This document shows, piece by piece, positions 1 to 41,800 of a stretch of 64,000 bases of DNA. The notes under the pieces were generated by a model. That model ran no database searches, was not told the DNA's origin, and was given only the letters and a program-made list of their open reading frames with translations. The stretch is from positions 12,152,001-12,216,000 of the forward strand of contig OZ281494.1 of assembly GCA_965637545.1 (NCBI GenBank). The letters are read 5' to 3'. The position numbers and the translations under genes are program-made. Position 1 is the first letter of the stretch. Every line of letters begins with the position of its first letter. The stretch is from Phallusia mammillata. Its lineage: Eukaryota.

Positions 1-1426
1 GTATATTAGATTACAATGGAATAATGTCACACGAGCGTCACATTATTGACATATTCATTTCTCCACATGTAATACAGAGCACGGACCTAGATCTATGTAG
101 TTAATTTATTCATTGACACAGCCCAGTACGGCTAAAATAATAAGCATTTTAGAAACAGAGTTAGGGCCTTTTAATAATTGACATATTTGCCATGCTTTCT
201 GGTAAGTGCTAAAATATAACCACTTTATCATCTTTCGTTTTTTTGCAAGGCTGGATTGAGCTCTACAAATCAAAAGCACGTCCGACTGAATTAACAGGTG
301 GATAGGTGTAAAGTGTCGATGTTGTCGAACAAGTTGGGTGTCACTGTCAATTTTCACTTATATAATCTAAACACGCTCCAAGAAAGCTGTGTACTGACAC
401 GGCGAACAATATTTCAGCAGGCCCCCTTTAATTTGTTGACTACCTAGAATTTAATTTGACTATATGACTAAGATTATACAGTTTGAGATTTGCATGGAAG
501 CAGAACAGAAATTTCCCATATGTTGAAAGCACGACAAACACTCCTTGTAATGTATGTAGGCAATGTAGGTTATTGTGAAATGCACATGTTTATTAAAAAG
601 AAACAACGCGCGCCAAATTGTACTTAGACGTAAAATATTAAAGGCATGGCATTATGTTTAAACTTGTCCTAGGTAAATTACGTGAACGTGCTTTATTTTC
701 TGTGCTTTCCAGCATATGACTAGGTATAATATTTCATGGCATTTGGTAACACGTGATGTATTTTTAATTGTGACTTCACTAGAAAGAAACATTTATAGGA
801 GTCCGCCCCATAGACTATCAGGGATTAGCTCTAATGGGCAAGTGATGTCACTTTATGTAACTTTTAGTGGTGTCACCTGATCTATACAAATGCTTGCTGG
901 GTTTTAAATTTCACTCCTTGTGTCTGAAATAAAAGGTATTTGCTAAAATACTTTACCAATCTTAATTAGTATCAACGTAGAAGAAGAAAAAACAAACAGC
1001 CAACATATGGACAAAAAAGCTTTGATGTTGTTTTGTGATGTCCTTGTCTTTTTTTCACATTTTAAAACTCTAAAGCCGACATGTCAACTTTGACTAAATA
1101 TATGCCTGACGTAAGGAAATAAGATTTTTCTTTTAACATCCCCTCTATTCACCAAACGATTTCGTAATCGGTCAAAACAATACGCGCCCAAAACATTTTT
1201 CATCCCAGTCCATTAAATGGACTAAATTTTAGACCAGCTTAATCTTAAAATAAACCGCGGTTTAATGCCAAAAAAACTGCAATTAGCTGCTATAAGATTG
1301 CACAACGTTCTCATGAATGCCATGCTACAATTTAAATGAATCAAGCCAAACTACGTCCGATATCCTTTAAAATTTTGTAGTTAAAACTTTGACTTCAAAG
1401 GCACCCATTGTATTTGTATTTTCTAG

Positions 1427-1597
1427 GAAGAGTGTCATTAATAAAGACGACACCATCCTCAACTTTTTTATCGGCGTCTCTTTCGGTAAGAAACCTAACG
1501 TTAGATGATGCTGGTTCATACAGATGTCTGCAGTCCGTGCTTGGTTCAAAGCAAGGATTCGAAAGACATGAGAACTTGGTTGAACTCATTGTAACAA
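1427..1597 (+). CDS. Gene A exon: C-terminal half of Ig1
   Basis: ttttctag|...ACA A|gtaagt, phase 1-1; GRVSL...LSVRNLTLDDAGSYRC...VELIVT; same position and phase as gene B exon 39551-39694. Confidence 0.8.
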
Positions 1598-4500
1598 GTA
1601 AGTCAAAGTTTCGCCTGCATGTATTGCCAAGAATACTGTACGCAAGCTTATATTGGAGCTTTAACCGCAGTCATAGAGTTGCAAGCTGGCCCGAAATTCG
1701 AGAAAGTATAAGCCGAAGCCTGGCCCGTACCAGAATCGTTTAGGCACAAACGTTTGATTGGCAGGCCTATAATAAAGAAAACATACACAACAGGCAATAA
1801 AAGACAATGGTCTACACCAGTGCTCTTCAACCTTTTTTGGTTTGGTGAACCCTTAAAGATGTTGTGACGAACTCATGCACCCTGTTTGCTTAAATGTAAA
1901 CTTAGGTAGTAAGCGTTATGAAAAATCATTATTCATATCATCATGTCAATTAAACCGTGCGAAGCTCTTAAAAAATGCTTGATTTTCTACCAATCCAAGC
2001 ATATTTTCGCAAATTTTCTACGAAACATCGGCGAAAAAGCCAACACTCGATATCCTAATATAACCAAAATATAACAAAGACACTATGAAACTTGACAAGG
2101 GGATACAACTTTGACAAAAAGTTTACTTGGATTATACATCAGTTGAAACCTACATCTTTTTTCTAGTATCCTGAAAATCAAATATTAATTGTTTATTAAA
2201 AGTTTGTGATTCACCCTTATACCTTTTCAGACTGGTGCACCCCATGCATATTTTGATGCACCCTAGGGTGCACCGAGCACACCGGTTAAAGAGCACTGGT
2301 CTACACAAGGCGTGTTGGCAACTAGCTATTTAGCTAGCTGATTTATTTTTTTAATTTGAAAACAGAATATGAAGTCAGGCCCGAATCAAGTTTGTTAAAA
2401 AAATCCTAAGCCCGAACCCGGCCCGACTAATAACTCTAAGCCTTCAATTAATTAAACGATAAAGATAAATGTACTTTTAGGAAGTACGGAATTGTGGGTG
2501 CTTAGAAATTAAGTGTTATAATTCCAATTCAAAGTGTTCTGAAGTCATTGCGTGATAATGGTAAAACGCTGTAACCGACAGTGGGAACATATTTGATTTG
2601 TTTACATTGTGGAGCCCTCTTGACTGCTGGGGAAATAATCGTACGTTTGTAGTGCCCAAAGTGGGTGCAATCAAGCAGAACAACAGTAAGGTCCCGATTT
2701 GTTATTTGTTGACACAAAATGGTCTGTGTAGTGTTAAAACTAGAATTGACAACGTGTTGCGGGATGTAAATGGTAACTGCTCTAGTCTACATATGTGACT
2801 AAATTTTATGGTATTATGTTACACTCCATCAAGGTTTCTTGGAATGGTTAATATTGTGTACAATGGTGTTTTGATTTGTATTTCATACCTAATTCACTGT
2901 TATGCAAGCAAAACGTTTTTTGTCTTCCTTGCAAAACGCTTGGACCGATCAAAAGCAAAAGCCAGCAGAGAGGTGTTTTCAGTTTTTTCATTTTAGCGCC
3001 TAATCTGTGTGTGAATCAAACCATCAGACAAAAAATCTCTTTAAAGCTAAGATGAAGTGCGCAACACGTACTGTTGTTGAAGCTTCCATATCCCTTTCCT
3101 GCGGTTGGCACTTTATGAAATTCTGTAACACTAGAGTGCGCTAGAGTCACTCTGAGGTAAAAATCGATTTGTGCGTCGTCGTTGATTCACACCAGCATAG
3201 ACATACTAAATATGTTTATAGGTTTATGTATCAGCTTAAAACACTTTTACGTGTCTCCTTGCTTTTAATTTTGGTCGTAAATAGCCTGAAAGGTATCGCA
3301 ATGAACATGCTGAAGGATATCTTACCACGTCACTGTCTAGTATTTACTGATTTATACAACTAACATATTTATTTGGTGACAAATACATTTCATCTGTAAC
3401 ATACGTTTGCGACAACCCTTAACTAAGGGTTATATTAGCGTAAAAAATGTTTTCTAAAAAAGCACCCACAGGTTGGTTGGTGGTGTGCAAAATCGTTCGG
3501 TCGACAAAAAATGTAAAACTTAGCATTGTAAATACTAGTATGTCAGTAAACCTACTAAGATTACTTCGTAATGTTGACTGGCGAATCGCATTTGACCTCA
3601 AACCACCCAGGATGACTCATAGTTTGTTTTGCAGCATAGGCCGCAAATATCCGCATTTATTTACGCTAATTCGAACTTGCACGGCAGCAGATTAATACAT
3701 CGCAAATACTTATGAATTCGGACAAAATTTCCTTATTTGCTCATGCGCCGAATTGCTACGAATTTTTGCTTTTCACCAATTAAACCCTGTTTATCACACA
3801 ACTTTAAAAGGCTTGCAAATTATAATTTTGCGTTTTACCGCGATCATGTCCAACTTCAAGATTTCTTAAGGACACAAGTTAGTTTTTCTGCCCACCTATT
3901 TAGAAGTTTACCCTAAAATATATACAACTTAAAATGCTCTTGTCATAGTTAATTGCAGTCGTTCTCGACCAAGACTTAAATTGCGTTTACTCGCGTACCA
4001 CAAGCTGCGAACCACTGATTTATCGAATAATTAAAACGCGAAATAACTCAATTGAATTCATAAAACGTCTCGCCTTTTTATAACCTCTTCATAGAACAAA
4101 TCTATCACTCACTGGTCCGCTGTGCAATCAACCGTGGAAGCACGGATTGTAGTAGTCAATGCAGCGGTGACGTGTGCGCAGTGATGCGTGTCGGACAATG
4201 GTGAGGAATTCCGGAGATTCGTGCTTCGACAAGGCGACGTATTTTCTCCGTTGCCGGGGCGGATGTTCGTTGTTTCTTGTGTGATGTGGGACGTGTGAAA
4301 AGTGGGCTATTTCTGCTGCCGGCGCGATTTGAAGTCGCATTTCACGAATTGTACGTGGTTGAGGCTATTTTTGTAGCGGAAGTTACTCTGCTTGGTACAG
4401 GTGTAAGGATGTTTTTGCGCTCTATGGAAGTTAGAAATAGTTTATAATTTGAAACGTGATAAAGTATAAGTTTAGTTGTTTTTCGGGAGATCGTTAAGGT

Positions 4501-7500
4501 AAAATATAATTGGTATATACTGTAGGATACTTGGTTTGTCAATTTTGTAAAACGAGGAAACTCTGAAAAACGTTTTTAAAAGGTTGCTAATTAAAAAATG
4601 TAATCCTTAAATTGGCTGGCACGAAGCTGTAATACTTTGAATAAACATGAGATGATCTTTTTTGTGTAATTGATTTACCCTTTAAGAACTTTCAATTTAA
4701 GTCAATTCGATTTTGACTTAAATTTTTGAATTGCAGTTTTTCGTTAAATTCGCAAAAGTCTTGAACATAAAATTCGTACCGCATGAAAATTTATTTTTGA
4801 CAGTTGTAACTACGGTTAAGAAGAACACATAACAACTATTGTGCTAGGTTTCGCTGTGCTAATTAAGCTAAGTACACATGTCGCCTTTTGGGAAAAAGCC
4901 TTCACATCGACTTTGGCGAGGTCATTAATCACGTGATAAATTGCAACGGTCGCGTAATTGTGTCGATTTAGCACCTGCCACGGGCACTGGTAAAACGTAC
5001 GAGCTTCCTATTCTCGAAGGAGTCGTAAATATCTACTAATAAGTTAAAGGTTGTGTCATAGCTTGAAATGCGAGCCATTTAAGCAAATTACCTTCGATCC
5101 ACGATCTCTGGCAGAAGTTAACTGGCGCAGCAGTGGATGGACCATTGGGCATTTACTGAATGCAGCAAGTTGCATTATTTATTCATGCTTTGCGTGCGTA
5201 TAAATAGGCGGCCAAGCCAAGCTCCGTATTATCGCTGCGCTGTTAGTTTAAATGCGACGATACTTTGTTTAATGGCCATGACGTCATCGTTGCAGAAATT
5301 TGTTATTGACGCCAGGGCGTTTTTGCGAGAGTCTATATTGCTTTAGGACACACAGTAATTTAAGGAAGCTTATGTTGAACGTAAGTTGTATAAATTTCGT
5401 AAACTTGTTCTGATATTTTATTGGACTGTTAGTTGGATTTAGTTGACGGCAAAACTATACCTTTAATGTACCTTAATTATTTTTGTTTTTTGGAGTCAAG
5501 TAATTTTTCACTTATTTTCTGAAAGGTCAGAGTTCGACGTGCTTGAGTGACTTTCGTGTAGCAACCAATAGAGAGGTCAAAGATAACTTGTTTGAGTTCA
5601 AGCCAGAGTGAATTGTTGTTTTAAGAATGCGGTTTCCCAGCCAATGTATGTGAAGCGTTTAGGCTAATTGAAGTTTAAACAGGGTTTAGTTGATTTTAGG
5701 AAGCCAGACGACTTTTGCTGTGATAAAGCAACACCTTTTGAAACGTTATTAACTCGCAAACATAAACATACCGATTCGTGTTGTAAGGTTATAAATCATT
5801 TTATAGTGTTGTTTAATTTTTGCCAAATGTTGTATTCGGACTATGGTTTGCATGCAGTTTGGGCCCAACAAGAGTTTGCGTAATTTTGTGCGTTTACGTT
5901 TCAAAATTGGACTAACTTTACAAGAGATAAAATGTTGCATAAAGAGCGTTAAGATAATGTATAGTAACACAATGAAATATTCGTGTTTTAGGACTTTAGC
6001 AAGAAATTTAGTATACCTTACATTTACATACAATTTTAGAGAGCTTTAATCTGCTGTAAACAACTTTGACCACCTGCCTCAGGCAAACGCCCCTATAGCT
6101 TGTTTATGTTAGTGCAGGTGAACACCGATCGAACATTCGTATTAAAATGTGTGAATATTTTGTCTGTATTTTGTTTCATAGCAGTCTTTGACGGTTGAAC
6201 GTTTTTAACCGTGAATTTTTTCCCCGTATGACACTCCTAGGAATTCGTATCCTGCTCCTTTTGGGATAGCCACGAGAAAACTAACGAGCGCTTACCGGAG
6301 GCGCCGACACTTTGCATTTCCTGCAGAAAGGGCGGGTGGTAACTCTCTTAGTCATTTTGAGCTAGCGGTAATTACAGTCTAATTTGAGGTTTGTAAACCG
6401 ACACATCTCACACATATCGGAACCAATTCAGTTGTTTTCAAAAATTTGTCGTTTGTGCGCAGTATATTGGTTAAAATTTGTTTGGCAAGGCCATGCAGTT
6501 TTGGTAACAGTGAGTTTTAATGCATGTCAACTGCCAGACCATTTGGCACAAGCCGCACAGATTCACGGCTGGCCTAAGGGTATTTGTATACGATCGTACA
6601 TTGTAGTTAACTTTCTTTAAGACCTTGCATGTGCCTTTACGAGTTTCCTTCGAAACTGCACTTGGTATGTTTGCAATTCACTAGCTGTTCAACGAAGAGA
6701 AATGATATAGCTGATTGTCAATAGTAACGCTTCACCACAGAGCCTTTGCGGTATATTTGCGCAAATAATTGGTTAGTTTGATTTTTAAATTTAATGTAAT
6801 TTAGTCGTCAAAACCTAGTTCAAAATGGCTTTTAGTTTTCGGATGTTGAACGAGGGCTTTGAAGTACAAAAAAGAGTATAATTCATACCTAAAATAGATT
6901 TCAAAATTGCAAGAGATTGGTTTAAACTTTAAAGGCTACAGCTTTTACTGTATCTGCGATGTAAGGTTTAAGGTGTTAGACATGCTGTTTTTCTCTAAGC
7001 GGGTCTGTTACATCTTACATGCACAGTAGTGCTTGCTGACATTTGTACCAAGGCATTCATTTGACCTCAGTCTAAAAACATACCGATTTTGCAGCTTGCG
7101 TGGCACCGTGAGAAAAAAGGTAAAAGGCAAATCGAGAATGACGTAAGAGCAAAAGTCAATCGACCTGATCAAGGCTTTTTAGCGACTGATAGCCGTCAAC
7201 CCTTGAGCGAACAGATCGGTGATTCTTATAAGACGGGCGGAAAGGCTTGATACATTAGATCTGCCTTTGACAAAAACTGGACTGTCAAGAAATATGTTTG
7301 TGTTGAGTTACTAGAGCGATTGCGATGAGACAAATTTGCAAGGTTTGTAGATAGTGGGATAAATTAAGATACACCTTTATTCGGAATCGGAAGTATTAGC
7401 GTTGGTGCGCCAGGGTTTGACATGTTTCGAAACGTATTGCCGGTGTAAATCGGAGCAATATTTAATGAAACGCTGATTTTCTTGTCACTTTGTTTGACAT

Positions 7501-10500
7501 TTTGGGATTCTAATGCATATGTAAGCAACAGTTGAACTGAAATCTTGTCCTGTATAACAATACGAATAAAAACGTTAGATAATAAAAATATTTTAAACCT
7601 GGGTCAAATTTGTTGGGCGTGTGTTGCATATCTGTTTTGGAATGATTTGTTTGGGTTTGACTCTTGCACGTAAACAGTTTGCACTTGTGTGTCAACTTTA
7701 AGTCCGAGTCGACACCCACTCAATTTAGAACTGCTGGCGAACAGTCAACATAAATTATATATTCCTTGCGCAGTTAAACGCAACAGCAATGGTATAGCTC
7801 GCCTTTACGGGCTTTGTTTGGAACATAAACTAGTAATGTTTGGCGCAACACTGTGGCAGAGGAGCTGGAAACGCAGATGGCCTGCTGCTGGCCTTTTGCT
7901 GTTGTTTATGTTGGCGACAAGACAAGCGCTTGGTGTTAAGAATGGAGGTAAGTGCTGTCCGGTGTTTTTAAAAGTAAACAAACGTATGTTTATTTGATTG
8001 CGAGACCACCTTGTATATGCGAGTGTTGCGATTTGTTTATATTTTAAAGGGTTTGAACAGTTTTAGAGCGAAATCACTTCAAAACTACCGTTCGCAATGT
8101 GTGCTGCAATAATACGTTTTGTCACTAAAACATTATGGAACAACATTTTGTTGGGGCTTTGAACTGAGTATAAAACTGTTTTCTGTAAATGTATAAGATG
8201 TATAAAAGTGTTTTTCACGCAAAACCATCTCGCATTATATTCAACTTTGAAACCGCGCGTACGTTTCAGGTTTAACCAAGACATAAAATATTAATGACGC
8301 AGCGCTCTGCAAGTTTATTGGAACAAATTATCCGAAATGACATGCATTGTTACGTCAGTGCAAGCGAAAATCTAGATATATGGGCTTTAATTAAAATTCG
8401 AATTCTCCCATTGTCTGTTTCTATTGATGTCCGTTCAATGTTGCTAGGTTTGTGTAACTGTGTGTTTGCTTTTGTGTAACTGTGTGTATGTCTTCGCGTT
8501 ATAACTTATAAGGGCACAAGTTCAACCATAACTGTTTGTAGTATATATGGTTTTCGCTAAAGGTATAATTTTGTAAAGACTGCCAGAAATGATTAAATAC
8601 AGTTTAATAAAATATGTCTGGAATTATTTACTGCTCTTAGCCTTCACAACAAGTATACGATTTCTTAAGCAAAGCTTGTTTAATTCCCTGTAATCTAGTA
8701 ACATACTCAACTAGTGCATTAATGACATAAACCTTTCGCGTTTCTCCGTCAATAATGATTGGCGAGCGTTTGTCTTGGGCTAGAGTTAAGCACACCATTT
8801 AATCGAATTAGTTTTTATTAAAATTGATTGCAGTCAAGCCAGAATTGATTTGTGGCTTCCCTGGGCACCGATAAATTCTATGTAAGCCCCGGATTATTTC
8901 CTCAAAAACAGTATGTGTGGCCAATACATGGCTCCATACGCTGCATTTTGCAATTGTATAATGGACTGAATGTTAATTGAATTCTGAAAAAAGGCCATGT
9001 GTTATATGTTAGAGATAATCTTGTGATGGTATGAGAATATTTTTAAACCTGTCTGCCAAAGACCTTACTATTTGCGTGTTTCTTTTCTTGGAAAAATGTT
9101 AATGTTACTTGACGAAATAATGATTGGAAGCGACATTTATTGTTAAATTTAAACCACATGGGCGGCAGTGCCCCAAGAATAACAAAACAGATCCGAATTT
9201 AATGTGTTTGTCCAACATTTTTTGTTGGTGTCACTAAAATAATGTCGATTTTGGGTAAACTACTACTTCTAAGTAAACTGTGTATAAATTAAATATTTTT
9301 TGTGGTTGTTTTAAACTTTCGTGTTTCGCTTGTATGTGGTACATTTCTATCTTCGATTTCGGTTTATACCTGACTCGGTTGCTACCAGCAGTGCGGTAAA
9401 AATCAATATGTGACACAGAAATAAATGTCAAATCAAGGTCAAAGGTGACTTATGAATAAAAAATGGTAACTGCTGCGCGTTTCTGCAAATCAAAATCTAA
9501 ACGATCGACTCTTTTTCCCAGGTTATCTCATATTTGTTTAAAAAGTGTGGAAAAAAGTTAAACCCCTTAGTGTTTATCGCGAAAACAAAAAAGTTTTACT
9601 GGTTTTAGGTTTTTATTATCAATCTTTGCAAAACAACCGTTTCGAAAAATGCCGTTTCAGTCTAATCTCGTTCCCGCCCAAGTTCAAAACGTTGTGACGT
9701 AACAAGTACCCGGCGAACTGCCAACTGTGATGTAAAACAGATGTTCTGTTTTTACACATCATTGGGCTCGGTTTAGACTTTGTTGTTTTTCAAATTTGCC
9801 AGGTACTTGAATCAAAACATGTTTGCATGGGCTCTTAAATGCTTTTAAACACCACGCGTTGACTTTTCAGCCTTATCGGTTTTGTTTTGTTTTGCCGTAA
9901 AAATTAAAGCTTTATAATTCTTTTAGGTTTTTAGGCACGGGTTATAAGAGCAACTCCGGACAAAAAAAGTACCTACAAATTTTTTAAGTTGAAGTCTTAT
10001 CAAGATGGTCCAACACAACTGTAGCATAGAAACGTTAAAAGCGTGGTCTGCGGATAAGCTCATGTTTATCTTGATCATCTAAAAAGATTACAACATCACA
10101 ACCTAAATCGATTCTTCAACGAAATCTCTTGTCCAAATTTGGATATGATCATTCACCTCATCTCAATTTATAATTATTGTTTGATGTATATCACAACATA
10201 CATCTACAAATGGATTTTATGTTATAGTTAGGCTTAATGGAGTGGTCTTGCTAAAAACTGCATGAATGCCGCTAAAACTATTGCAGCTACTGCTTTAGTA
10301 CAACGTTTAAAACAGATTTTGAGGTGAAATTAAACCCTGTTGTTTAAGTAAATGTGGTAAAGATTATTTTTATTAAAGATATGATTAGATTTTGGATTGG
10401 ATTTAAATTTATGACATCTTATATCTTACTGGTCATGCATTTCACAATGCTAAAAAAAACTTGGTCTTTAAATTGGATTTCCAAACTAGAGTTCTTGAGT

Positions 10501-13500
10501 ATTTATTCAATTTCCAACTTACTTAAAGTTAACTAAACCATACTCAAACAAGTTTAAACACAAAATCAAACAAGCTTTTCTTGAGGAAAATTTCGATTTT
10601 GTTGGCTAAACACGTTTTTGGCGAGGAATAATCCACCCTTTGCACGTTACAAGATTAACAAATGTATACTGGACTGCTTTCAAGTCGGTTGGTAGATGGG
10701 TGATGGACGAGTTTCGTTTAGTTTCAAAGTGTTGAGGGCTCGTGCTCAGCAAGATGGAACTGTTTGTTGTGTGGTTTTTCCGACCATTTCTGTATTTTTG
10801 CGGCTACATTTTTCTTAACTTTTGGCTTAGTGATTTGAGTTTAGACGATGTTGGTGGTGTAAAAAGGCGACTTGAATATGGACGTTTAGACATGTACATC
10901 AGGCAAAAATGCTTTGTATGAAGCCTGCTACCATTTTGTGACTTTATTTTGTCAATTTACCTACTAATTTGCTATATATTTGATGTTTATTAAAGTCACG
11001 ATTTTTATGTTACTAATTTGGCTTTTTTACAGTGGAAATGTAAGTACATAGATAATCGCAAAGTCCAATGTTGTGTATTTGTTTAATTAAATGTTGCCAA
11101 ACACACAGTTGACGAAAATGTATTTTTGGTCTTTATGGTTTTGGAATGGCTTATATAAAGTTTTAATTAAAGCATCTGTAAAGTTATTACATTGCAATTC
11201 ATTTACTATCCAAAATTACAAAAACATCAGCGAACCGAAGGGCAGAACCGTTCCGCATATACATATGCAATAACGAACAGCTATACTGAATACGTTCGAT
11301 AAATAGATTTCCTTCGTTTCAATCTACCCGCTCGTTTATTTGAGCATCGACAAACCGGTGACGTTTAATAACAGTTTGAGCTATAGCAATACTTTGACGT
11401 CTCCATTGGGAGTTTGGTCAGTTCTCAAACGAAATGAAAGCTGTCAATAGCATAACGAAGTCTCAATATTAGTTTTGGTCCTTTTTCAATCGTTGAAAGG
11501 TTTACAACCTTGGAAAGGGGGAGAAATTATTACAGAAAAAACGGTTGGAAGGTGAAAAACATCAAGCCGTATGCAGAAGTCGTCTAGTCACAAGTCTAAT
11601 TGAAAATACACGCTGCCTTTTGTATGTGCTGTCAATGTCCGATTTTACAAACCTAAAGGATCGTCAGTTTGACCTTTGTAAACGACTAAAAATACATATG
11701 CAAAAGCATTGGGATATACAGTAGTAAACCTTGACACAACGCTTCTTCCTCTTATTGCAGCACCCCCGACTTTTACCAGACCACTGCCAGCACGTTACAG
11801 CGCCAGGGTGGGCCAACCGCTCCTGCTTCGATGTCACGCAAGGGGAGTCCCCGTTCCGACAATCACATGGACCAAGGGCGGACGAAGATTAAGCTCGGTA
11901 CAGATGTGATAAACATAAGGGCGCTATTTCATAGGCATATTTTTACAGGAAATGTGTAATACACGTTTGAAACCCGAGTACATACTTACACTTTAGCTCT
12001 AGAACATTCAAAATATCCATAAAAAGCCGGTTTTACATTTAGTATCTAAACATGGAGTGTGCAGTCAAATATGGCGGTTGGGGCATATTTGCGACATCGG
12101 TTATGCTCTAGTGAGCAAATGGGCATGCGGTTTGATTTGAACATAAACATGACCTTGACACCTCACACTTGAGATTGCTCCTCTGCGGATGTAGTTATGA
12201 CGTAAAGTTGACGCGTGACTGCGTTTGCCCTGGAATGCGTGTTGTCTAATGGGTGCCATACAACGTGCGGAATTTAGAAAACGTAGTTTTTGCCGTTTTT
12301 TTTGTTTTTACGTTTAGATTTACATCCAAAGATGTCAATTGGAGCACATCCAAAGATGTCAATTGGTACAATCTGTATATCTGTCAAAAATATAGTGACA
12401 ACTCGCTGGTTCCTTAAAATGTCTGTTTTTCTTACAGCTTTTAAAATAAGTTGCGTCAGCGTTTAGGAACCAGCGTATATCCTCGTATTGATCTTTTACT
12501 AATGCTTTGACATTTTCGTAATGGACTCCATCAAACAACACAACACCACATACTAATCCTTCGCTGATCTCTGTCACGTAATGAATGTCACACGCCCTCG
12601 GATTTGCCTTCTTATGACGTCATAACCATTACGTCATGTTAGAGTCTTAATTTTGGCCGCAAAGAATAACATACAAAAATGTATTTTGAAAATATAACGA
12701 AGTTCCTAACTGCAACCGAATAGGATATAAAGTAACAGAAACAGCACTCTTTGCATTTACGGACTAGAAGACAAATGCTAGATCTTACAACCGTAAACTT
12801 ACCAAAAAACAACAGTTTTTTGGATGATGTATTCCAAAATCAAACCACACACTTGATTTTGTGGCAACAACAATTTAGAGTTAAACTTTTCACTAAATGT
12901 TGAGCGGGACATACAATTCCTAGAAAACTGTTGGCCACACAGAATATAAATTTACAAGCTTTGATAATTTAGGCTTTAATCCTGTCTTCAAGTGCGATAA
13001 TCCTGTTTAGCCAATGCAGGAAGGTTACGTACGTCACGGTAAAGCAAATTCCAAAAAGTCTTGTCTTTAAAAATTCGCCGAAGGGCAAAACAAGGTTGAA
13101 CTGTTTCAGGAATTTCACCAAACCCTCATATTTCGGTAACGGTTACTGAATTTTTGCATTTTATCAATTAAGTAATAACGGATGTATCAGTGGCCACAAC
13201 TTGACCACAGCAAAAGTTTGCTAAAATGGAATTATAGCGATTTCGTTGGCTTACATTTTTTTCAGGTAAGCACATTAAGCTTGAACAAGTTACAGATATC
13301 AGCCCACCTGTCTCGCTCAAATTTCGTGATCTTGGTGTGGCCTAGATTTAATTCCTTTATCCATTTTTATGGCAATTTTTGAATATTTTGATCAAAGCAT
13401 CAGTCAAGTTGTGATGTTGAACCACTAACTTTTAGAACGTTATAACATGCTAAATACTCTTTTCTTGTTTTGTAGAGTGGGATAACAGTTAGCGACGGAA

Positions 13501-16500
13501 CCTTGCGAATCGCTTCATTGCAACGGAGCGACGCTGGCAAATACACTTGTAGGGCTGGGAGTGTAGAAGGTTCAGTTGAACAAAGCACTCATGTTTTTGT
13601 GACCGGTAAGATTTAATTGCTTAAAAACTTTGCATATTGGTGAAATTTTTGAATCCACATTTTTATTGTTAAGACGGCTGTAATATATTACTTCCATAGC
13701 TGTTTGTGAAATAGTATAGCTTAAAAATTAATTTTTGTGTTATGGTTTGTAGCTCCGCCACAGTTTGTTGAATCACCTCAAGACGCCACAGAACGCGAGG
13801 GTGAAAATGTTTTGTTTAAATGCAAAGCAGATGGATACCCGACAAACATTACTTACAGGTATGTTATGCTACAACAATTAATATGCAATAAACACGAAAA
13901 ATTTGAGCAAGAGTGTTTAATGGTACAACTGCTTTTTTAAATCCAGTAAGATAATTAATTTAGCTCTTTTACAAACTTACAAAAATCACAAAAAGTAAAA
14001 TTTTTACCATTTTTATCTATAGTTGGTTTCACAATGGGGTTCTTGTCACCGGGAATTCCCCGCGTAAGAAGATCCCACAATCAGGAACTTTGGTCATATG
14101 GAATCTGAAATCAGTGGACCGTGGTCAGATCACGTGCCAAGCGAGCAACGGTTACGGTCGAGCGCCCTCCGTGACTGCTTCACTGACAGTGCTATGTGAG
14201 TAACATAAATTTGTAACTCAGTCATGCAAGTGCGATATTCCCATTGTGGTCTACGCACCGTTATGTTGACTTTATTTGGTAAAATATCACCGATTCTAAT
14301 CGTGGGTGTTTTTTGCTTAGCGTTTCAGGTAAACTAATTTTATTCGTTCTGTGTAGATACAAGAGTACTAATTTGACAATCTATAAACGAGAGCCAGCCT
14401 ATTGTGTCCGTTTTCCTATGAAACGTGGGACTAAATTATTTCTGAGTAGCTCTCAGATTCTAATTTTAACAAGGTTACCCATAAAACACTCCCATGACTA
14501 ACAAACCCATCAACCTCTACAGAGTCATTTTAATATGTTACTACGTTTCTGAAACGAAAGACTTCTGCATAACTTTGCATGTTGAAACAATTTTCCTTTT
14601 GCCAACTTTTATTTCAATGATACAAACCGGTTACAGCGTTTGCTTGATTCTTTTCCGGCTTTCCAGTCAAAAGTCAATTCCTATCCATAACGTTTTCCGA
14701 TCAATATACGCTTCTGAGGGCGCAGAGCGGTATTTTACAATCAAGCGACTTATGACGTCACAATCAGCGTTGATTGCAACAAACGTCATCTAAATCCCAA
14801 ACGACTGCCTTGTGGGAAACATAAAACGTTTAATTATAATAAAGGGATAGCGGGATTTTCTTCACACAAAGGGCGAAAGATTTTTATTAAAGTCTCAAGG
14901 AATATGTGTGCTTGGAATATGTCATTTGGAAAAGTGCATGTTTTGAAAAAAATAGCTATCAATATATTAATTTATTAACCAGTTTAGTTGAATTTTAATA
15001 ATGGTGCTTTGTTAGTACGTTATCCTCGTAGGACAAGATTTGCAAAAATGGTTGAACTTTAAAGTAGAATAGGTCACGTGGAACGAAAACTTGATTGCGT
15101 AATCCCGGCTGCATTTAAATCTCATACCAGTGGTAAAACCTGTCATACCGAAGGCAACTCGTAAACAAACACGTTAAGCGTAATGATGTTGTGATAACAT
15201 AAGATCGTGTATCTACGCCAACAGCTACTGTACCATAAGTCGATGTGGCTGCCGCTTTTAAGCTATAGCGAATTCTGAAATCCCGGTAGAATGCAGATAA
15301 TCCGCCCACGCCGGGTGACAATTGACGAGTTTAATAAACTTTAATTAGTTGCGCCGTGCTTTTCTCTTTAGCGACCACGTGGATTTTAAGCGCAGAAGGG
15401 TTCAATTAAGAAACGTTATGTTCTTTATTCTTAAACAGCAACCACATTCTTGTATTTGGCTGACGTTATGGATACATAAAGTCGTTGTACGAGTTATTTT
15501 TTAATTTTCATTTTTGAAAACCGAAAACTTGAAATAATTTTAAAGTTTAACACAAGCCTGTTGGATAAGTAGGCTACAACCTTTTTTGCTGGAAATTGAC
15601 TCCAGCTAAAATGACAAACAGCAAGTATTAATGACAAAAATGTTACAGAAACCAATATTTGGCTTCACGTTTAGGTGTAGGCCTACACTTTATATTTGTT
15701 TTTTTATATAGATGCTGCTCGGGTTGTTCGCATGCCACGAAGAGTTTTCGGTGGGATTTCTATGCCTCTAACCCTTCATTGCCCTGCAGTAGCAGATCCA
15801 CCCGTTACTAGGGTGATTTGGAAGAAAAATGGCCGAAACATTAGAATACAACAGGTGAGTAAACCGCTGGTGACAATTTATTTACATCTTTGACTTAAAT
15901 ACCAAATGGTCAAAAACCACGAATGTTGCCGAAGTACATGCAGAGGAGATTTGTTTAAGTCAAGGTTACCTAAATTGTTGTTTTAAGTTTTTCTCGAATA
16001 TCTAAGATCATTAATCTAATCATTTAGTCACAAGTTTAATGTTTTTAATCGAATAAAGAAAAGTATTCGTAATATACGACACAAAACATCATTATAAAAA
16101 CAACCCGAACTTAATAATTGACTTTATTGGAAAACTACATCAAAAAACTTCAGAACCACTGGGAAAATTCAAACTTGGTGATTAACTTTAGTGGAAACTA
16201 CACCGAAACGGTTCAGAACCACTGCACTAAAGAGATGAAATTAATAGTTTTTATGCATTTTTAGGATCCAAGGTTATCCACTGACGGCAATGGAAGTCTC
16301 ATTATCCACAACATCAGATCCAGTGACTCAGGCCCCTACACTTGCACCCCCTATAATCTTATCGGAACCCATGGGGAATCACCCGTGGTGCGCATGGTCA
16401 TCAGAGACCCACCCCGCTTCGTGGTCAGTCCCAAGAAGAAATATCGTGCAGCGGTGGGTGAAACCTTGGTAGCTCCTTGTGCTGGAATCGGCGATCCCCT

Positions 16501-19500
16501 GCCAACGGTCACTTGGCGAAAGGTGAGTGTTGCTATGGCAGTAACCACGTTAATATTATTTAGAAAAAAATGTTATAGTGAATAATCTTACAAAGTAGTT
16601 TCTTGACAGAATGTCTAGAAATTGTCTTTTTTGTTTCGTTGTTTTGTATTGTAAGGTTTCGTGCGACGATTTTTTAGTTTGGTAAACGATGTAAATTGCA
16701 TTTCCCTAACGTTTTAGCTTAAGAATGTAACAAACCGTATTGTGCGTATTAAAACATACATGTACAGTGTTAACTGGAAAAACAATTTTCGCACCGGCAT
16801 CTCAATTTCTGTTTTCGGCAGCTTCACGGTAAAACGACCGACTACTCCTACTGCATTGAGGGTGGCAACCTGAGCATTGTGTCAACCCGCAAGGAACATC
16901 ACGGCATCTGGCAGTGTGTGCTCTCCAATGCCGTCGGTGACGTCACTCGTGACGTTATGGTTGTCGTCACACGTACGTGTTTTCCTTTTTAAACTTTGAC
17001 TTGCTTAAGACAGGCTGTTAGAAATATATTAAGCTTCGTTAAACTGTACAACTCCTTTTATCGATTGCACAGGGCCTGTTTGGTGCTTCTTTGGTTATTT
17101 TCTGGCAAAGATCAATTGTTTTATTTTGGCGAAGAACGTTGTATTCCATTAGCAAACAAAAATATATTTAACGTACGTAATTCTTTACAGACACAACACC
17201 GCACGTGGTTCAGAATCTGACAGCCGAGGTTGTCGATGATTCGTCATTTCGTGTCACGTGGGAACCAAACTTCGACGGAGGTTTTCCTCAACACTTCATG
17301 ATTTGGTTAGTTTCGCAAAAAAATACTGTTGTCCAGTATCAGTTCTCAATGTAAATTTTGTCACAAACTTTTCACAGGTACAAGGAGGTGAACCAGGGCG
17401 ACAACATGTGGCGATCGGAATACAGGGGAGGTGACCAGAAGGTGGCGCTCCTCCCACAGTTAAAACCGAATACGTTTTACCAAGTTTCTGTGATGCCTGA
17501 AAACAAATTAGGAAAAGGTGCCTTTAGTCCAACTGTCACCGTCAAAACAAATGGTAAGTTATTTTTCTATTATTTTATAAGTTTATCGGTCAATGTTGTG
17601 ATTGTATATGTATGGTGGTCACAAAAATGACACACTCATATGACTATCGCACCTGGATGTAATACCCCAAGACGTACTTACGTCTATAATGATTTGATTA
17701 ATAAACGGAGAAGATTCGAACCACTAAATATTGGTTGTGATGTTACACTAAAAAATATGGGCCAAGAGGCAGTATTTAAAACCGAAATTTGAATAAACCC
17801 GCATTTGCATTTTGCAACCATAACGTTCTTGCGACAATGTTAAAATGTTCATGGCTAAAGTTACCATTAAAATTAAAATCAAGTTGTCGAATTGATGTTC
17901 CTTTTACATTTATTTTTGAACTTCAAATGGTGGGTAAGCTAACACACAATTTATTTTATATGCAGCAAGGGTAATACCTCAGTCCACTCCCTCACCTACT
18001 CTTCCATCACCATCCGGTTTGATGTCGACCACTGACGAACGCGGCCAGGTGGCGCTAGAGTGGCAACCTCTACGCAATGCTCACACCTTGCTTGGTTATG
18101 TGATCGAGTACAGGAGGATCGGTGGTGACGACACAAAGGAGGATGTGACGTCATTGAAACCGGTGCCTGCCTGGGCACAAAAAGAAACAAACAACGGTTC
18201 ACAAGGTTTGCAAATATTATAAGTGGTTGACAGGTATGAATTGAAATCCACACTCTTGCCTTAGAAAGTGGGTAACTGTTTAATTAAATGTATAAAAAAA
18301 GGTTGGTGCAAAAGCCTATCACAATTATGGTAGCAGTGGTTCCCAACTTTTTCGACGAATTCCACCTTTAACCATTCACAACATTTTTATTCCCCCTAAT
18401 ATAACACATAGCAGATGGTAAACCATACAAATATCATTTAAAATTGGGTAATTTATCAACTTCACTTGTCATTCTATTTACAAACCAAATGTAAAATTAA
18501 ATTTCTCCCTTGGGAACCACTGCAGTAGTGTTTGTTTCACTAAGCAATAACGCCATTATTTTAAACTCAAATTAATGGCATTATTAAACCATCATATCAA
18601 CACGCATTCCAGGGAATATGAAAATTAGTAACGCATGGACACTAATTGACACAATACGGGTCCCTTGAAAAATTCTGTTCATTTTCTTGTAGCGGCTACA
18701 TCGCGCACACGGAGAAGCGTCGTGGATTCGAGATGGGAAAGATTAGACACGACCCCGTTCAACGTCACTAGTTACGTCATCAAGCCAGAACAAATGTACC
18801 GTGATCAGATTTATGAATTTCATGTGTTGGCTGCCACTCGACTGGAGTACACTTTGCCGAGTGAACCCTTAAGACTATCGACTAAAGGTAAGGTAGTTTA
18901 AAATAGTTCATACAAACAACATTTTACTGCTGTTTATGTGAAAATGTTTGCACACGAAAAAGTTGTTGCAATATTAAACACCTTAGAAATTAAGGTGCTA
19001 TATACTCACGAGATTATCAATTAACTTTGCACTTAGCTGCAGACAGCACACTGTTTTGACCTATAAGGTCCCATCAGTGCAGCTGGTGACAAGACATTGG
19101 CCTTTCGAGCTAGTGGAACCAGACTGCGGCACTCCAGTTTGAACTTACGTGGTGAGAGCCATGCCTTACCACACCTCGTCTGCAGTTAACTTATCATTGT
19201 ATCGATACATTGCTTTTAACTTTTATCAATAAAAAAAATATTATCAATAATAATTATAATATCAATTATTATCAGTAAAAAACGTCCTATGCTTTTCAGG
19301 ACTTGCTGCCTACCCTTGTTTTGTGGAGAAATACACTGTTTTGCGCCACCCAGTGGTAATAGGTGTAATTACCGGATCGTTTGCAATGCTCGCTATTGTT
19401 GCGCTGATTGTTTTGTGGAGATGCCGACACAAACTTGCAAACTTAAAAAGACGAAACTCAAACAAAGAACGAAGTAAGTCTTAAATGAAAATGCTAAATG

Positions 19501-38800: not shown

Positions 38801-41800
38801 TATAGCTTTCGCAACGGAAGAAGGGTATTTTATCCTGTCAATATTTGATGTGTGCAATATTGCTTGTCTGCCAAGCAAGGAGCGGAAGCCACTTCGCCAT
38901 CTCACTCAAATTCCCGTATCAGATAATGGTTCACCATGAATATTTCATCGCAAGGCAAAAATACCTGACGGATAACGGTCTTACATGGAGAAAGGTTTTA
39001 TCTGATCTCCTGAAGGTTTAAACGAAAATTTTTCATCCTGCTGGTTGACAGTTGATTGAAAATTCTTGCCTTAATACAAACATTGGATGTTTGAAAGGGA
39101 TTTACGCTTTATACTTTTCAATATGACCACTTATATGCCAGGTCTTGATCCGGTTGTCTCATTTTATACACTCCCCTTGGCTTAAACCTTTACATGGAAC
39201 CAAACGATGTACTGCTTACAAAATTGTGACATTAATGTTTTGGTCAGTTGTCTAAATTAATTACCTTACTGTTTAAGCAACTACAAAACCGTATTATTTT
39301 GACCGTTTCAACGAATAAGTTTTGTCATCCAATTATCGCACATTCACCTTGCTACTAAAAACACTGGGTTGTTTGTGAATGAATTTCGATGCAACCTGTA
39401 CAATGTGTTTTTAACTCTTGCGTTTGTACTCACTGTTCAAATGTTTTTCTATGTATATTTTGTTTTTTCACCGGGTATATGTCTGTATGTGGGTCAGACG
39501 CGTTGGAACATTCGGCCAAGTTCTTGCCCTAACGCTATGTTCAATCTCAGGTCGTCTGACTCTGCTGAGCAACAGCGCTACCCTACGGATATCAGATTTA
39601 CAATTATCAGACGAGGGGTGGTATCAATGCAAGATTCTGTATCTCGACGAACGGCCAATCAATAACGGGACGCTCACACATCTTGTAGTGGACGGTGAGT
39701 AAAGTAGCTTTTGTGACAATTCCTCAAAATTTGTTTTTCGTTAGAACCGAAACCTAAGGTTTCGAGTTTTTCAATAAGAATAAATAGTCTAACGTGGAAA
39801 AAGACATCCTGTATGATGATGTTCACGCACAGTGCATGTAAATTTTAAATTATCTGAACAATATTCAATCCAAACCCCAATAATGTGCATTCACAAACTG
39901 AACCACTTAGCAGAAGACAATATGGGTGCGCCAAAGCGAAAACCATTTCTAAAATTGTCAGTCATACTCTTATTGACATAATTAACTCCGATTGGTGACT
40001 GTCTGTGTATATCGAGCGTACAAGTGCGACACGAATCGATGTGACAATCGGCAAAATTGCGTGTATTCGTTTAGGGTTCTTAAAGGTACTTCAGTTAAGA
40101 GCTGGAGGGACATTGTTGTGTCACAATAAGCACTCAAACTCTATTCGATTGGAGAGTGGTGAAAGTTATGTGTAGTAAGTTTGCCAGTAAAAAGTCTTGC
40201 CATGATTGGTATTGATTCTAAACAATTTGGAATAGAATAATAGAAACCGTTTTACTCTTGAGGTAGACAGAGTTTTGCAACAAGCGTTGTGCAGTCGTAT
40301 ATAAAATATGTTCTATGAAAAATTCAAGCATAAAACTTAATGAAAATAACGCCCTAACAAGTAGGCCTAACAATAATTTTGAAAATGATATATTTTACGT
40401 TGGGTGATGCGCAAAACATAACGAAACCATGCGAATTTAAAAGCAGTACCGAAACTACCAAACATTTCCCAGAGAAACCCAGTCCATGTATAATGCTGTG
40501 ACGTGATGTAATATCGAGCAGAATTAAGTCCTTAATAAAGGTTGCAATATGCAGACGTACTACGCAGTCTCGAACGCAATAATCCAAGGACGCGCTCTGG
40601 GCGGAGCGAATGCAATTAAACGTTTTTCTGCGCATGGTTCACGGCTCTATACGCGACAGATGTTAAGCCCTGGGTCAAGTGCTACTCTACGCTTCATATA
40701 ATGGACTATGACATGAATATACTTGAATAAGAGTACAGTATAAGTGTATAAATTTGTCAGCAGTGTTGCATATTACTGTGTGTTGCTAAAAAGGTTTAAC
40801 ATGATTCGGAGACTTGAGTTTCGACTAAAATGATATCAACTGTATTAGGGAATTATGGTCGTGAAACAGTACTGAGCGATATAGAAGTTTAGTCTAAAAC
40901 TTTGGAATGTTATAACTGGTTGTGTACATTGCAATACGGTTTGTTTTATGCAAGCAGTAAAACGTTACTAACTGTACTATTTTTCCATGCTAAGGCCGAA
41001 TAGTACAAAGATGCTATAATCTGGTTGTTACTTGTATTTTGCATTTTTTCATTCAGTGTTATTTATGAAGTGACAAAGGCTGTAGTATATGCCCACCTGA
41101 GTTTACACGATACAGTTCTGTAGGAAAAAGTATGAGTACAAAGCCTTAGTGACGAAACAACTTATGACAAATAGTCAACTTGGTCAGCAAAGTTACACTG
41201 TTTACGAGAAGCTGATATAGCAATCGATCACGTGCATCGACGACTTGGCCTGCACTCATAAACAAAAAAGAAAACAATGTCTTGGAATAATGCTGTGCAT
41301 TGTACGCTGTTGTCGATTAAAATTCGTCTAGTGTCTTGGGATGTTTAGAAAATTGTCGGTGGCTATTGTGGGTGCAGTCTAGGTAGAATGTTGTTGGAAA
41401 ACTTTATTTCCTACACCCGCTAGTATTTTTACAGCAAACTTGGTTGTCAACTATGAAGCGACGTGTAAGGAACCTAAGAGTAAATAATAAAGCTATCTTC
41501 TGTAAATCGAAAAATCTGCGAAAAAATGGATTGTAAAGTGCTGATGTCATAAAAGCTTGATCTATCGGATTTTAACACTTTTTTCGCACATTTTGTTCCT
41601 AATCCACTTTTCAGTGAAGTTTTGATAGACATGTACATTTAGTTTGGCTCAGAGTCTCAAAATATCATTGTAAGTTTTCATATATGCAAGCATCGCGGAA
41701 TCGATAAGATAGATCTCGTCGGTTTCAATTGGGTTTAAAACGATTTTAAATTCATTGCAATATGTTGAAAGAAAAAGTGGAAATTTTGCTGTCTGTTTTA

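Follow-up and report, generated by a model that had tools for sequence, protein, structure and literature searches.

A second first coding exon in an ascidian IgSF9/Turtle-type receptor gene gives a short mRNA without the outermost Ig domain

Introduction

IGSF9 (Dasm1), IGSF9B and Drosophila Turtle are homophilic adhesion receptors of neurons, and receptors of this family shape dendrites, axon tiling and inhibitory synapses via homophilic binding. A Protein Data Bank search returned no structure for the IgSF9/Turtle family. A gene of this type, here called gene A, lies in the window, a 64-kb stretch of Phallusia mammillata DNA that also contains a related gene B. The 10-kb intron between the Ig1 and Ig2 exons of gene A holds what resembles a second signal-peptide exon. 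Does gene A produce a second mRNA that starts in this intron and lacks Ig1, and if so, how does that mRNA acquire its 5' end?

Results

The gene A exons in the window matched CAB3262900.1 (P0032, Phallusia mammillata) with 93-100% identity, including 93.5% for the Ig1b exon at 1427-1597 in a tblastn search. Pfam analysis of the exon translations identified a V-set-like Ig1, Ig2 to Ig5 and two FN3 domains, and the Pfam set of P0032 was identical. A membrane span, VVIGVITGSFAMLAIVALIVLW, lies within the ORF at 19260-19481. The IgSF9/Turtle/Dasm1 receptor consists of five Ig domains, two FN3 domains and one membrane span in that order (PMC3678166). With giant multi-Ig proteins set aside, the best named matches were vertebrate 'protein turtle homolog A' (IGSF9), with 30-36% identity over the ectodomain (E about 1e-118), and a Ptychodera 'turtle homolog B-like' protein was also among the relatives. 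These giant proteins dominated the protein search with the Ig4b-Ig5a exon, for which the useful rows were P0032, P0145 and P0149.

In the tree, Phallusia gene A and the Ciona protein were sisters (100/100), gene B branched outside that pair, and the tunicate clade (100/100) stood beside a hemichordate and vertebrate IGSF9/9B clade; the tree contained no outgroup from another IgSF family. Inspection by eye found an obvious class I PDZ-binding motif in none of the three C-termini (P0032, KPSDVEPK; Ciona, RLQQDEF; Styela, APTNT). These comparisons identify gene A as the ortholog, in Phallusia, of Ciona LOC100184924 and as an IgSF9/Turtle-type receptor whose five Ig and two FN3 domains are followed by a membrane span and a long tail. 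The Phallusia protein cluster contained the long form only.

The sequence features named in the initial annotation were all located where it had placed them, to within one base. The exons and splice sites around the intron, and those of the exon within it, are as follows.

250..297, + strand: Ig1 microexon of gene A, 16 codons (WIELYKSKARPTELT), from AG/GT borders and translation; residues also in P0032; long isoform only
1427..1597, + strand: Ig1b exon (second half of the V-set-like Ig1), phase 1 to phase 1, from Pfam V-set/ig and tblastn of P0032; donor joined to 11761 in the long isoform
7757..7773, + strand: AG acceptor with its pyrimidine-rich tract (tatattccttgcgcag), at the 5' border of the alternative exon; each of the four contigs starts within 7772-7776; probable spliced-leader acceptor
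7774..7947, + strand: alternative first coding exon of gene A, from RNA contigs of four runs and its frame; passed a crude signal-peptide test
7948..7953, + strand: GTAAGT donor, phase 1, from sequence and the GT..AG joint in contigs
11761..11897, + strand: Ig2a exon, common to both isoforms, accepting 1597 or 7947; Pfam Ig_3/I-set, profile positions 1-44; contig joints and unaligned ends
13476..13605, + strand: Ig2b exon, next in both isoforms, from splice borders; unaligned letters 3' of 11897 map to 13476 in four of four runs

The acceptor AG occupies 7772-7773, which places the exon start at 7774. A 5' UTR (7774-7835), with a minimal uORF (ATG GTA TAG) at 7789, precedes the ATG at 7836-7838, and the coding part (7836-7947) comprises 37 codons plus one base in an open frame that reads MFGATLWQRSWKRRWPAAGLLLLFMLATRQALGVKNG. 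The exon ends in phase 1 at 7947, immediately before GTAAGT, and the split codon g/ca across 7947/11761 leads into APPTFTRP. The frame remains open from the ATG at 7836 through Ig2a and Ig2b.

Transcription of this exon was assessed in contigs from four runs of three studies, X1 and X2 from one study and X5 and X9 from two others. Assembled contigs were used rather than raw reads, and some of their ends may stem from branches in the graph. In each of the four runs, depth was confined to the 200-base bins 7750-7949 and 11750-11949, which hold exon 7774-7947 and Ig2a, indicating that these runs behave as RNA. The exon boundaries fell at exactly 7774 and 7947 in every run. Contigs of X5 (4523 nt) and X9 (4929 nt) aligned from 7776 and 7774, respectively, to 7945 and then to 11759-11897, with a GT..AG joint that skipped 3813 bases, and both continued into the Ig2b exon at 13476. 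The predicted junction 7947>11761 was thus recovered in two independent studies. In the third study (X1 and X2), the alternative exon was present as stand-alone contigs of 180 and 178 nt aligned to 7772-7947. The Ig2 contig of these two runs was joined to the end of Ig1b, its unaligned letters 5' of 11761 corresponding to window positions 1568-1597, and 1597>11761 was the dominant form in that study. No contig among the four runs carried both joints. Since 7947>11761 was found in two studies and 1597>11761 in the third, both isoforms exist. The contig joints and the open frame together supported the proposal that a second start exon in the Ig1-Ig2 intron feeds an mRNA whose frame runs from its own ATG directly into Ig2, with Ig1 absent.

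The initial annotation had also assigned the short form a promoter and a non-coding first exon further upstream.

5199..5380, + strand: proposed TATA box and non-coding first exon; motifs present, at chance frequency; unsupported as promoter or exon

The motifs are real (TATAAATA at 5199 and GTAAGT at 5381), but their reading as a promoter and first exon found no support in the contigs. A TATAAA with a GTAAGT 60-400 nt downstream of it is found at three places on the + strand of the window and at one on the - strand, making the pairing unremarkable. The junction 5380>7774 was present in none of the contigs of X1, X2, X5 or X9, all four of which stopped at the 7774 acceptor. The X1 and X2 contigs started at 7772 with three and one extra non-genomic letters, respectively, before an AG that matched without mismatch, whereas an exon 5199-5380 would end in AC. 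The X5 and X9 contigs ended at 7776 and 7774. Across the four runs (contig starts 7772, 7774 and 7776), the 5' border of the mRNA therefore coincides with the AG acceptor. A CRE at 5279 was considered as a promoter mark and rejected; it is a perfect palindrome, but the window contains 19 of these where 1.1 are expected.

Spliced-leader trans-splicing is known for Ciona, where the leader ATTCTATTTGAATAAG ends in AG and the reaction needs an acceptor with no donor upstream of it in the transcript (PMC1488885). The AG with one to three non-genomic letters in X1 and X2 is compatible with the AATAAG end of the Ciona leader, a match far too short to serve as proof. The Ciona leader sequence has no copy in the 64-kb window. 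The acceptor-to-ATG distance is 62 nt in gene A and 60 nt in gene B, and the trans-splice acceptor of Ciona troponin I lies 64 nt before the ATG (PMC3074122). The letters before 7774 fit an ascidian spliced leader rather than the 5380 donor; a cis-spliced upstream exon ending in AG could also supply them. Because trans-splicing needs an acceptor without an upstream donor (PMC1488885), an internal transcription start is likely for the short form.

The start peptides were compared with signal peptides by a crude hydrophobicity and -3/-1 rule, which looked for a basic n-region followed by a hydrophobic h-region (8-15 residues) and by small residues at positions -3 and -1. The gene A peptide has a net charge of +4, the h-region AAGLLLLFMLA and the site ALG/VKN, and the gene B peptide has a net charge of +2 and the h-region MSAILTSLLLCVTA. 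By this rule, the h-region scores of both were similar to those of canonical signal peptides. The 37-residue start of gene A is a predicted signal peptide, with cleavage likely after ALG at residue 33. An equally crude filter for an ATG, a signal-peptide-like peptide and then a GTRAGT donor returned four matches on both strands of the window. Two of the four are the alternative exons of genes A and B, both in phase 1, and these start exons are more than chance.

The counterpart in gene B, which the initial annotation had described as the same arrangement, does agree with gene A in position, phase and rarity, as read from the genome alone.

46777..46909, + strand: candidate alternative first coding exon of gene B, sequence only; ATG at 46837, MRKMIANVHGMSAILTSLLLCVTA, phase-1 GTAAGT donor
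48020..48162, + strand: Ig2a exon of gene B, in phase with 46909, from sequence

The candidate exon is preceded by an acceptor at 46775-46776 and contains a minimal uORF (ATG AAT TGA) at 46805. Its length of 133 nt and the stops in its phase-1 frame rule out use as a cassette exon.

Similar starts were present in the gene models of two other ascidians, both automatic (Gnomon) RefSeq models. In Ciona intestinalis LOC100184924, isoform X3 (XP_026689413.1) reads GARAGLNG/APPTLVV where isoform X1 (XP_018666826.1) reads VRLVVE/APPTLVV. As in gene A, the X3 start, 45 residues and hydrophobic, is joined at the first Ig2 residue and replaces both the signal peptide and Ig1, and the exon ends are alike (AGLNG/ in Ciona, GVKNG/ in Phallusia gene A). 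Unlike gene A, Ciona X3 has a long n-region of 24 residues; the comparison with this model was made at the protein level. In Styela clava LOC120330818, isoform X3 (XP_039253697.2) reads MAQWINLFYLLFLINNFVSTLAAKS/SPPVLTS. Its start exon, with the ATG at L001 30501 and a GTAAGT donor in phase 1, lies within the 17-kb Ig1b-Ig2a intron, 2.7 kb before the Ig2 exon, and AG acceptors are found 154-185 nt before the ATG. It resembles that of gene A in being a separate exon with its own classic signal peptide. It differs in coming from another ascidian order, in an exon and flanks without sequence similarity to those of Phallusia, and in the RefSeq name 'roundabout homolog 1-like'.

The exon regions of gene A, gene B and Styela showed no nucleotide similarity, and exon homology among the three is thus argued from position and phase only. 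The arrangement recurs in gene B (predicted), Ciona and Styela; the two-start design therefore predates the divergence of the ascidian orders and is probably functional. These results indicated that a short mRNA with its own signal-peptide-like start and without the outermost Ig domain is real and conserved in ascidians. The arrangement had been put forward as undescribed for chordate IGSF9 genes. Literature searches found no paper on it, nor any that discusses the Ciona Ig1-less isoform, but the claim of novelty is weakened because XP_026689413.1 and XP_039253697.2 already show an Ig1-less start.

Discussion

The best explanation of these data, in which we have considerable confidence, is that gene A makes two mRNAs and that the short one depends on an intronic start and a spliced-leader acceptor. 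In the long form, the upstream exons (the first signal peptide and the Ig1 exons up to 1597) are joined to 11761. The short form begins with exon 7774-7947 in the 10-kb Ig1-Ig2 intron, with an open frame from the ATG at 7836 and its donor joined to 11761, and its predicted product is a 4-Ig receptor that begins at the first Ig2 residue and is otherwise identical to the long form. The primary transcript would arise from a promoter in the intron, somewhere from 1598 to 7773 and probably no more than a few hundred bases from 7774. Such a promoter is most likely, given that the exon begins at a 3' splice site and is preceded by AG and non-genomic letters. The acceptor at 7773 would then receive the 16-base ascidian spliced leader, and the TATA box at 5199 would be unnecessary.

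That TATA box could instead start a non-coding exon, 5199-5380, whose GTAAGT donor at 5381 would be cis-spliced to the 7773 acceptor. Its motifs are in place, but we consider this unlikely: the AC end expected of such an exon is not the AG seen in X1 and X2, the contigs of X5 (depth 23) and X9 (depth 32) break off at 7776 and 7774, respectively, without continuing into a 180-nt exon, and neither the TATAAA..GTAAGT pairs, which occur at chance level, nor the CRE at 5279 distinguishes the site. Still less likely is a cassette exon between Ig1b and Ig2 that adds 58 in-frame residues and keeps Ig1. The length of 174 nt, the phase 1 to phase 1 borders, the frame open throughout and the working acceptor would all permit it. 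However, no contig contains a 1597>7774 joint, Ig1b ends in AA where the letters before 7774 are AG, and a hydrophobic stretch would sit between two Ig domains. Moreover, the gene B exon, with its length and stops, and the Ciona and Styela models are usable as first coding exons only.

The short mRNA may also be real but poorly or not translated, through the uORF or decay, leaving an Ig1-less protein without a role. The two-codon uORF, 47 nt before the ATG and in a strong context (G at -3 and G at +4), is consistent with this account, to which we give little credence. At the Ig2 junction, the contigs of two of the three studies carry the short form, and an in-phase signal-peptide-like exon has been retained by two paralogues and across three species although the exon sequences are otherwise unrelated. 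A conserved design with unrelated sequence is the pattern expected under selection on the protein.

As to its meaning, the initial annotation had suggested that loss of the distal Ig domain may switch adhesion specificity or yield a dominant-negative form. We offer tentatively, as a proposal that may well prove wrong, that the arrangement is an ancient selected switch, in which an intronic promoter feeds a spliced-leader acceptor and cells choose between 5-Ig and 4-Ig receptors. Both paralogues and both ascidian orders would have retained it over hundreds of millions of years while the exon sequence turned over fully, and the 4-Ig form would have a binding role of its own, with another partner or as a cis-acting blocker of the 5-Ig form. 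If true, this would be the first case of internal spliced-leader trans-splicing that swaps the outermost domain of an adhesion receptor. A naturally occurring and conserved Ig1-less form is a ready experiment on the role of Ig1, in an animal with embryos open to electroporation and a small, mapped set of neurons. Protein isoforms may be missed by ascidian gene models in which internal acceptors are ignored.

An Ig1-less start exon is no new principle, as alternative first exons are common and other receptors are known in forms with and without an outermost Ig domain. Vertebrate IGSF9 and IGSF9B and Drosophila Turtle belong to the same family as gene A by best matches and domain order, and no second signal-peptide exon comparable to that of gene A was found for them. 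Mammalian Ig1-less models (Rousettus XP_036091189.1 and beluga) have starts that resemble read-in from the intron just before Ig2, and some mammalian IGSF9 models skip the Ig1b exon instead. A chordate-wide Ig1-less IGSF9 form was considered and rejected; a search with the bat start gave one further model, that of beluga, which is of low quality and whose start is not hydrophobic.

Neuroplastin (Np65/Np55) and FGFR1 (alpha/beta) are made with or without their outermost Ig domain, which alters binding. Unlike gene A, these receptors skip an internal exon behind one shared signal peptide and have no second start exon. The forms Np55 and Np65 are named in PMC8830789. At the 5' end, the likeness is to Ciona troponin I, which shares with genes A and B an unpaired AG acceptor about 60 nt before the ATG and discards an outron a few hundred bases long (PMC3074122). 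The troponin I acceptor is the only start of its gene, whereas that of gene A would lie inside an intron of a longer unit.

Identity and domain order of the receptor genes

Exon translations of gene A, one of two IgSF9/Turtle-type receptor paralogues in the window, were compared with Ig and FN3 profiles and gave the order Ig1 (V-set-like), Ig2-Ig5, FN3, FN3. When protein representatives were searched with the Ig4b-Ig5a exon, most matches were giant multi-Ig proteins, but P0032 (CAB3262900.1 / A0A6F9DIP6), a Phallusia mammillata protein, was also recovered; it has 93-100% identity to the exons of gene A between 1426 and 25274. The window accordingly derives from this species or one very closely related to it. 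P0032 represents the long, five-Ig form, with signal peptide 1 and Ig1, and its Ig2 starts at about residue 158. Hemicentin- and titin-like giants aside, its best relatives were the vertebrate "protein turtle homolog A" (IGSF9; E ~1e-118) and a Styela clava protein. A PDB search with the first 560 residues revealed no family member among the 60 matches listed of 98 (E up to 1e-10). In an ectodomain tree, in which the gene B row was an approximate join of tblastn pieces, the tunicate proteins formed one clade (100/100) adjoining a hemichordate and vertebrate IGSF9/IGSF9B clade. Gene A was sister to Ciona LOC100184924 (100/100) and gene B branched outside that pair, which indicates on the tree topology that the A/B duplication predates the Ciona-Phallusia split.

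Within Ig1 of gene A lies a 16-codon microexon, WIELYKSKARPTELT (250-297), that is included in P0032. At the same place in Ig1, a 16-residue Styela exon (ALTYESLAKRVNAMAK, 15566-15616 of the Styela locus L001) distinguishes Styela isoform X1 from X2, and thus a small alternative insert varies Ig1 itself. The Ciona protein P0155 (MetaClust, 1906 aa) has the neighbouring gene LOC108949332 (436 aa) fused ahead of LOC100184924. The fusion may be a read-through model; otherwise it hints at an operon-like pairing upstream of the receptor gene.

Sequence features of the alternative exons

The initial annotation described a second start inside the Ig1-Ig2 intron of gene A, and the same arrangement in gene B. 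All of the sequence features that it listed were found in the window, with positions right to within one base, and at the sequence level gene B has the same exon design as gene A (ATG, signal-peptide-like start, phase-1 GTAAGT, Ig2 exon).

Features of the alternative starts in genes A and B
5199, forward strand: start of a TATA-type motif, TATAAATA
5381, forward strand: GTAAGT downstream of the 5199 motif
7772-7773, forward strand: AG acceptor closing a pyrimidine-rich tract; possible exon start at 7774
7836-7838, forward strand: ATG of the gene A alternative exon, opening the reading frame MFGATLWQRSWKRRWPAAGLLLLFMLATRQALGVKNG
directly after 7947, forward strand: phase-1 GTAAGT donor of the gene A alternative exon; 7947 is one extra base beyond the last codon
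11761, forward strand: start of the gene A Ig2 exon, preceded by ...ttattgcag; split codon g/ca (Ala), frame continuing APPTFTRPLP...
46777-46909, forward strand: candidate alternative exon of gene B, with ATG at 46837, peptide MRKMIANVHGMSAILTSLLLCVTA and a phase-1 GTAAGT donor
48020, forward strand: start of the gene B Ig2 exon

The donor of the gene A exon is in phase 1 because a single base follows the last codon ahead of GTAAGT, and the spliced frame from the ATG at 7836 through Ig2a to Ig2b is open. A crude filter (ATG, open frame of 15-45 codons, basic n-region, uncharged hydrophobic core, small -3/-1 residues, then GTRAGT) was applied to both strands (128 kb) and gave only four matches. 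Two were the gene A and gene B alternative exons, both in phase 1, and the remaining two were weaker; in-phase matches by chance therefore amount to roughly 0.05-0.07 in an intron of such size. The hydrophobic cores of the four alternative starts (gene A, gene B, Ciona and Styela) were as strong as those of canonical signal peptides.

The Ig1-Ig2 introns of both genes have positive GC skew on the + strand and negative AT skew. In 2-kb bins, GC skew was 0.17/0.11 across 4001-8000 and 0.14/0.08 across 40001-44000, which exceeded most other bins of the window and was matched only by 56001-58000 (0.116).

RNA support for both isoforms

The 174-base exon of gene A was present in 14 runs from one organism and four studies. 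Contigs of four runs from three studies (X1 and X2 from P1, X5 from P2, X9 from P3) were aligned to 5950-11949. In all four, depth was found only in the 200-base bins 7750-7949 and 11750-11949 and was zero in the other 28 bins. Since depth was confined to the two bins that hold exons, these runs, for which the record type is not stated, behave as RNA.

In X5 and X9, a single contig (4523 and 4929 nt) covered 7776-7945 and 7774-7945, respectively, together with 11759-11897. The joint is GT..AG and skips 3813 bases; allowing for two ambiguous letters, it matches the predicted 7947>11761 junction. Beyond Ig2a, the next letters of both contigs match the Ig2b exon at 13476. The junction on which the initial annotation staked its short, four-Ig form is present in two studies. 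In X1 and X2, the letters upstream of the Ig2 exon were the end of Ig1b (1568-1597), and the alternative exon formed a separate contig (180 and 178 nt) aligned to 7772-7947. The presence of 7947>11761 in X5 and X9, and of 1597>11761 in X1 and X2, demonstrates that both the short and the long isoform exist; the one retained by the assembler at the Ig2 junction differed between studies.

Conservation of the two-start design

Among the sequences that cluster with the Ciona protein at 90% is isoform X3 (XP_026689413.1, 1445 aa), which opens with 45 residues, MLYSSKINATSCRAKSQCTAWLNTTIAYVIVVNLIIRGARAGLNG, before APPTLVVTPPP...; Ciona isoform X1 has a signal peptide and Ig1 (129 residues) ahead of the same APPTLVV. 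Styela clava isoform X3 (XP_039253697.2) starts with MAQWINLFYLLFLINNFVSTLAAKS and continues SPPVLTSAPP..., and its isoform X1 reads ...KLVVT followed by APPVLTS. In the Styela locus, the X3 start is a separate exon (ATG at 30501, phase-1 GTAAGT after 30576) inside the 17-kb intron from Ig1b (15981-16175) to Ig2a (33262), and AG acceptors precede the ATG by 154 and 185 nt. No nucleotide similarity was found among the alternative start exons, a common situation for signal peptides. The same intron, phase and separate signal peptide in two paralogues, three species and two ascidian orders suggest that the two-start design has been kept, and it probably dates back to the ancestor of ascidians and is subject to selection.

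Two Ig1-less IGSF9 models were found in mammals (bat and beluga). They were rejected as the same form, as their starts look like intron read-in just before Ig2, and the beluga model is poor with a start that is not hydrophobic. In the lemur and bat IGSF9 models P0203, P0206 and P0207, ...DPDYV is joined straight to APPQF..., so that the exon coding for the latter half of Ig1 is skipped and half a domain is left; these may be artefacts or a real exon-skipped form.

The 5' end of the alternative exon

Upstream extension beyond the acceptor at 7773 was at most five letters in all four contigs. X9 begins at 7774 and X5 at 7776, and X1 and X2 align without mismatch from 7772, so the letters directly before 7774 are AG. 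Beyond the AG, X1 has three further letters and X2 has one, and these do not match the genome. The initial annotation had placed a first exon at 5199-5380, spliced to 7774. That exon would end in AC, and the end of Ig1b is AA; the contigs show neither, which argues against the proposed exon. The pairing of TATA at 5199 with GTAAGT at 5381 was also not distinctive, as the window has four cases of TATAAA with a GTAAGT 60-400 nt downstream.

A perfect CRE at 5279 was likewise considered as a promoter mark, but it is one of 19 in the window and so does not single out 5199. No other 8-base palindrome is as frequent in the window as this one, TGACGTCA, whose 19 copies are spread across 5279-61224, compared to 1.1 +/- 1.05 copies in dinucleotide-preserving shuffles. 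Sites are both exonic (codons GAC GTC, Asp-Val) and intronic and have unrelated flanks, some lie close together (e.g. 38341+38361, 47342+47353, 51459+51471), and extra TGACG half-sites often lie nearby.

On paper, the alternative exon could instead be a cassette inserted between Ig1b and Ig2, since in gene A its 174 nt are open in phase 1. Such use is contradicted by the AG before 7774, where Ig1b would leave AA; it is impossible for the gene B exon, and it differs from the Ciona and Styela models. It is also conceivable that the transcript yields no protein, given that a two-codon uORF precedes the ATG in both Phallusia exons, yet a conserved in-phase exon with a signal-peptide-like start favours a protein product. 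The uORFs are minimal (start, one codon, stop), lie at 7789-7797 (ATG GTA TAG) and 46805-46813 (ATG AAT TGA), and start 47 nt (gene A) and 32 nt (gene B) upstream of the main ATG. Short uORFs are also present in the Styela exon region, and uORFs of this kind may be a translational brake that these exons share, or chance.

For the separate start, the 16-base spliced leader of ascidians offers a source of the 5' end. The Ciona leader is ATTCTATTTGAATAAG, and trans-splicing is restricted to acceptors that lack an upstream donor in the same transcript (PMC1488885). In Ciona troponin I, whose outron measures 459 nt, 64 nt separate the trans-splice acceptor from the ATG (PMC3074122), compared to 62 nt in the gene A and 60 nt in the gene B alternative exon. 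The AG, with non-genomic letters further upstream, tips the balance modestly towards a spliced leader at 7774. An intronic promoter after 1597 would then produce a transcript with an unpaired acceptor at 7773, to which the leader would be added at 7774. Because trans-spliced acceptors have no upstream donor, a leader at this position would imply that transcription starts inside the intron, after 1597. The internal promoter of the initial annotation would then stand, but probably at a site other than 5199.

An A/T-rich block, ataacaatacgaataaaaacgttagataataaaaatatttta, occupies 7553-7599 and is followed by 60 bases (7600-7659) with G+T of 0.75-0.85, which end 115 nt upstream of the acceptor at 7773. 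G+T-rich start regions were reported for Ciona trans-spliced genes (PMC4691747), and 7553-7659 resembles them; speculatively, it might serve as a candidate promoter and outron.

Relation to known receptors

In the literature on IGSF9 and alternative promoters, no paper dealing with an Ig1-less start was found, and none of the Turtle and IgSF9b papers that were checked refers to a form lacking Ig1. RefSeq, however, already lists the form among the predicted isoforms for Ciona and Styela, two ascidians, and the suggestion that it was undescribed for chordate IGSF9 genes agrees with the papers found but not with the database models. Of some interest are the conservation of the design across ascidians and the probable spliced-leader 5' end of the exon. 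The initial annotation hypothesized that loss of Ig1 switches adhesion specificity or creates a dominant-negative form. Receptors that come in forms both containing and lacking the outermost Ig domain are known, as in neuroplastin (Np55/Np65) and FGFR1 (alpha/beta).
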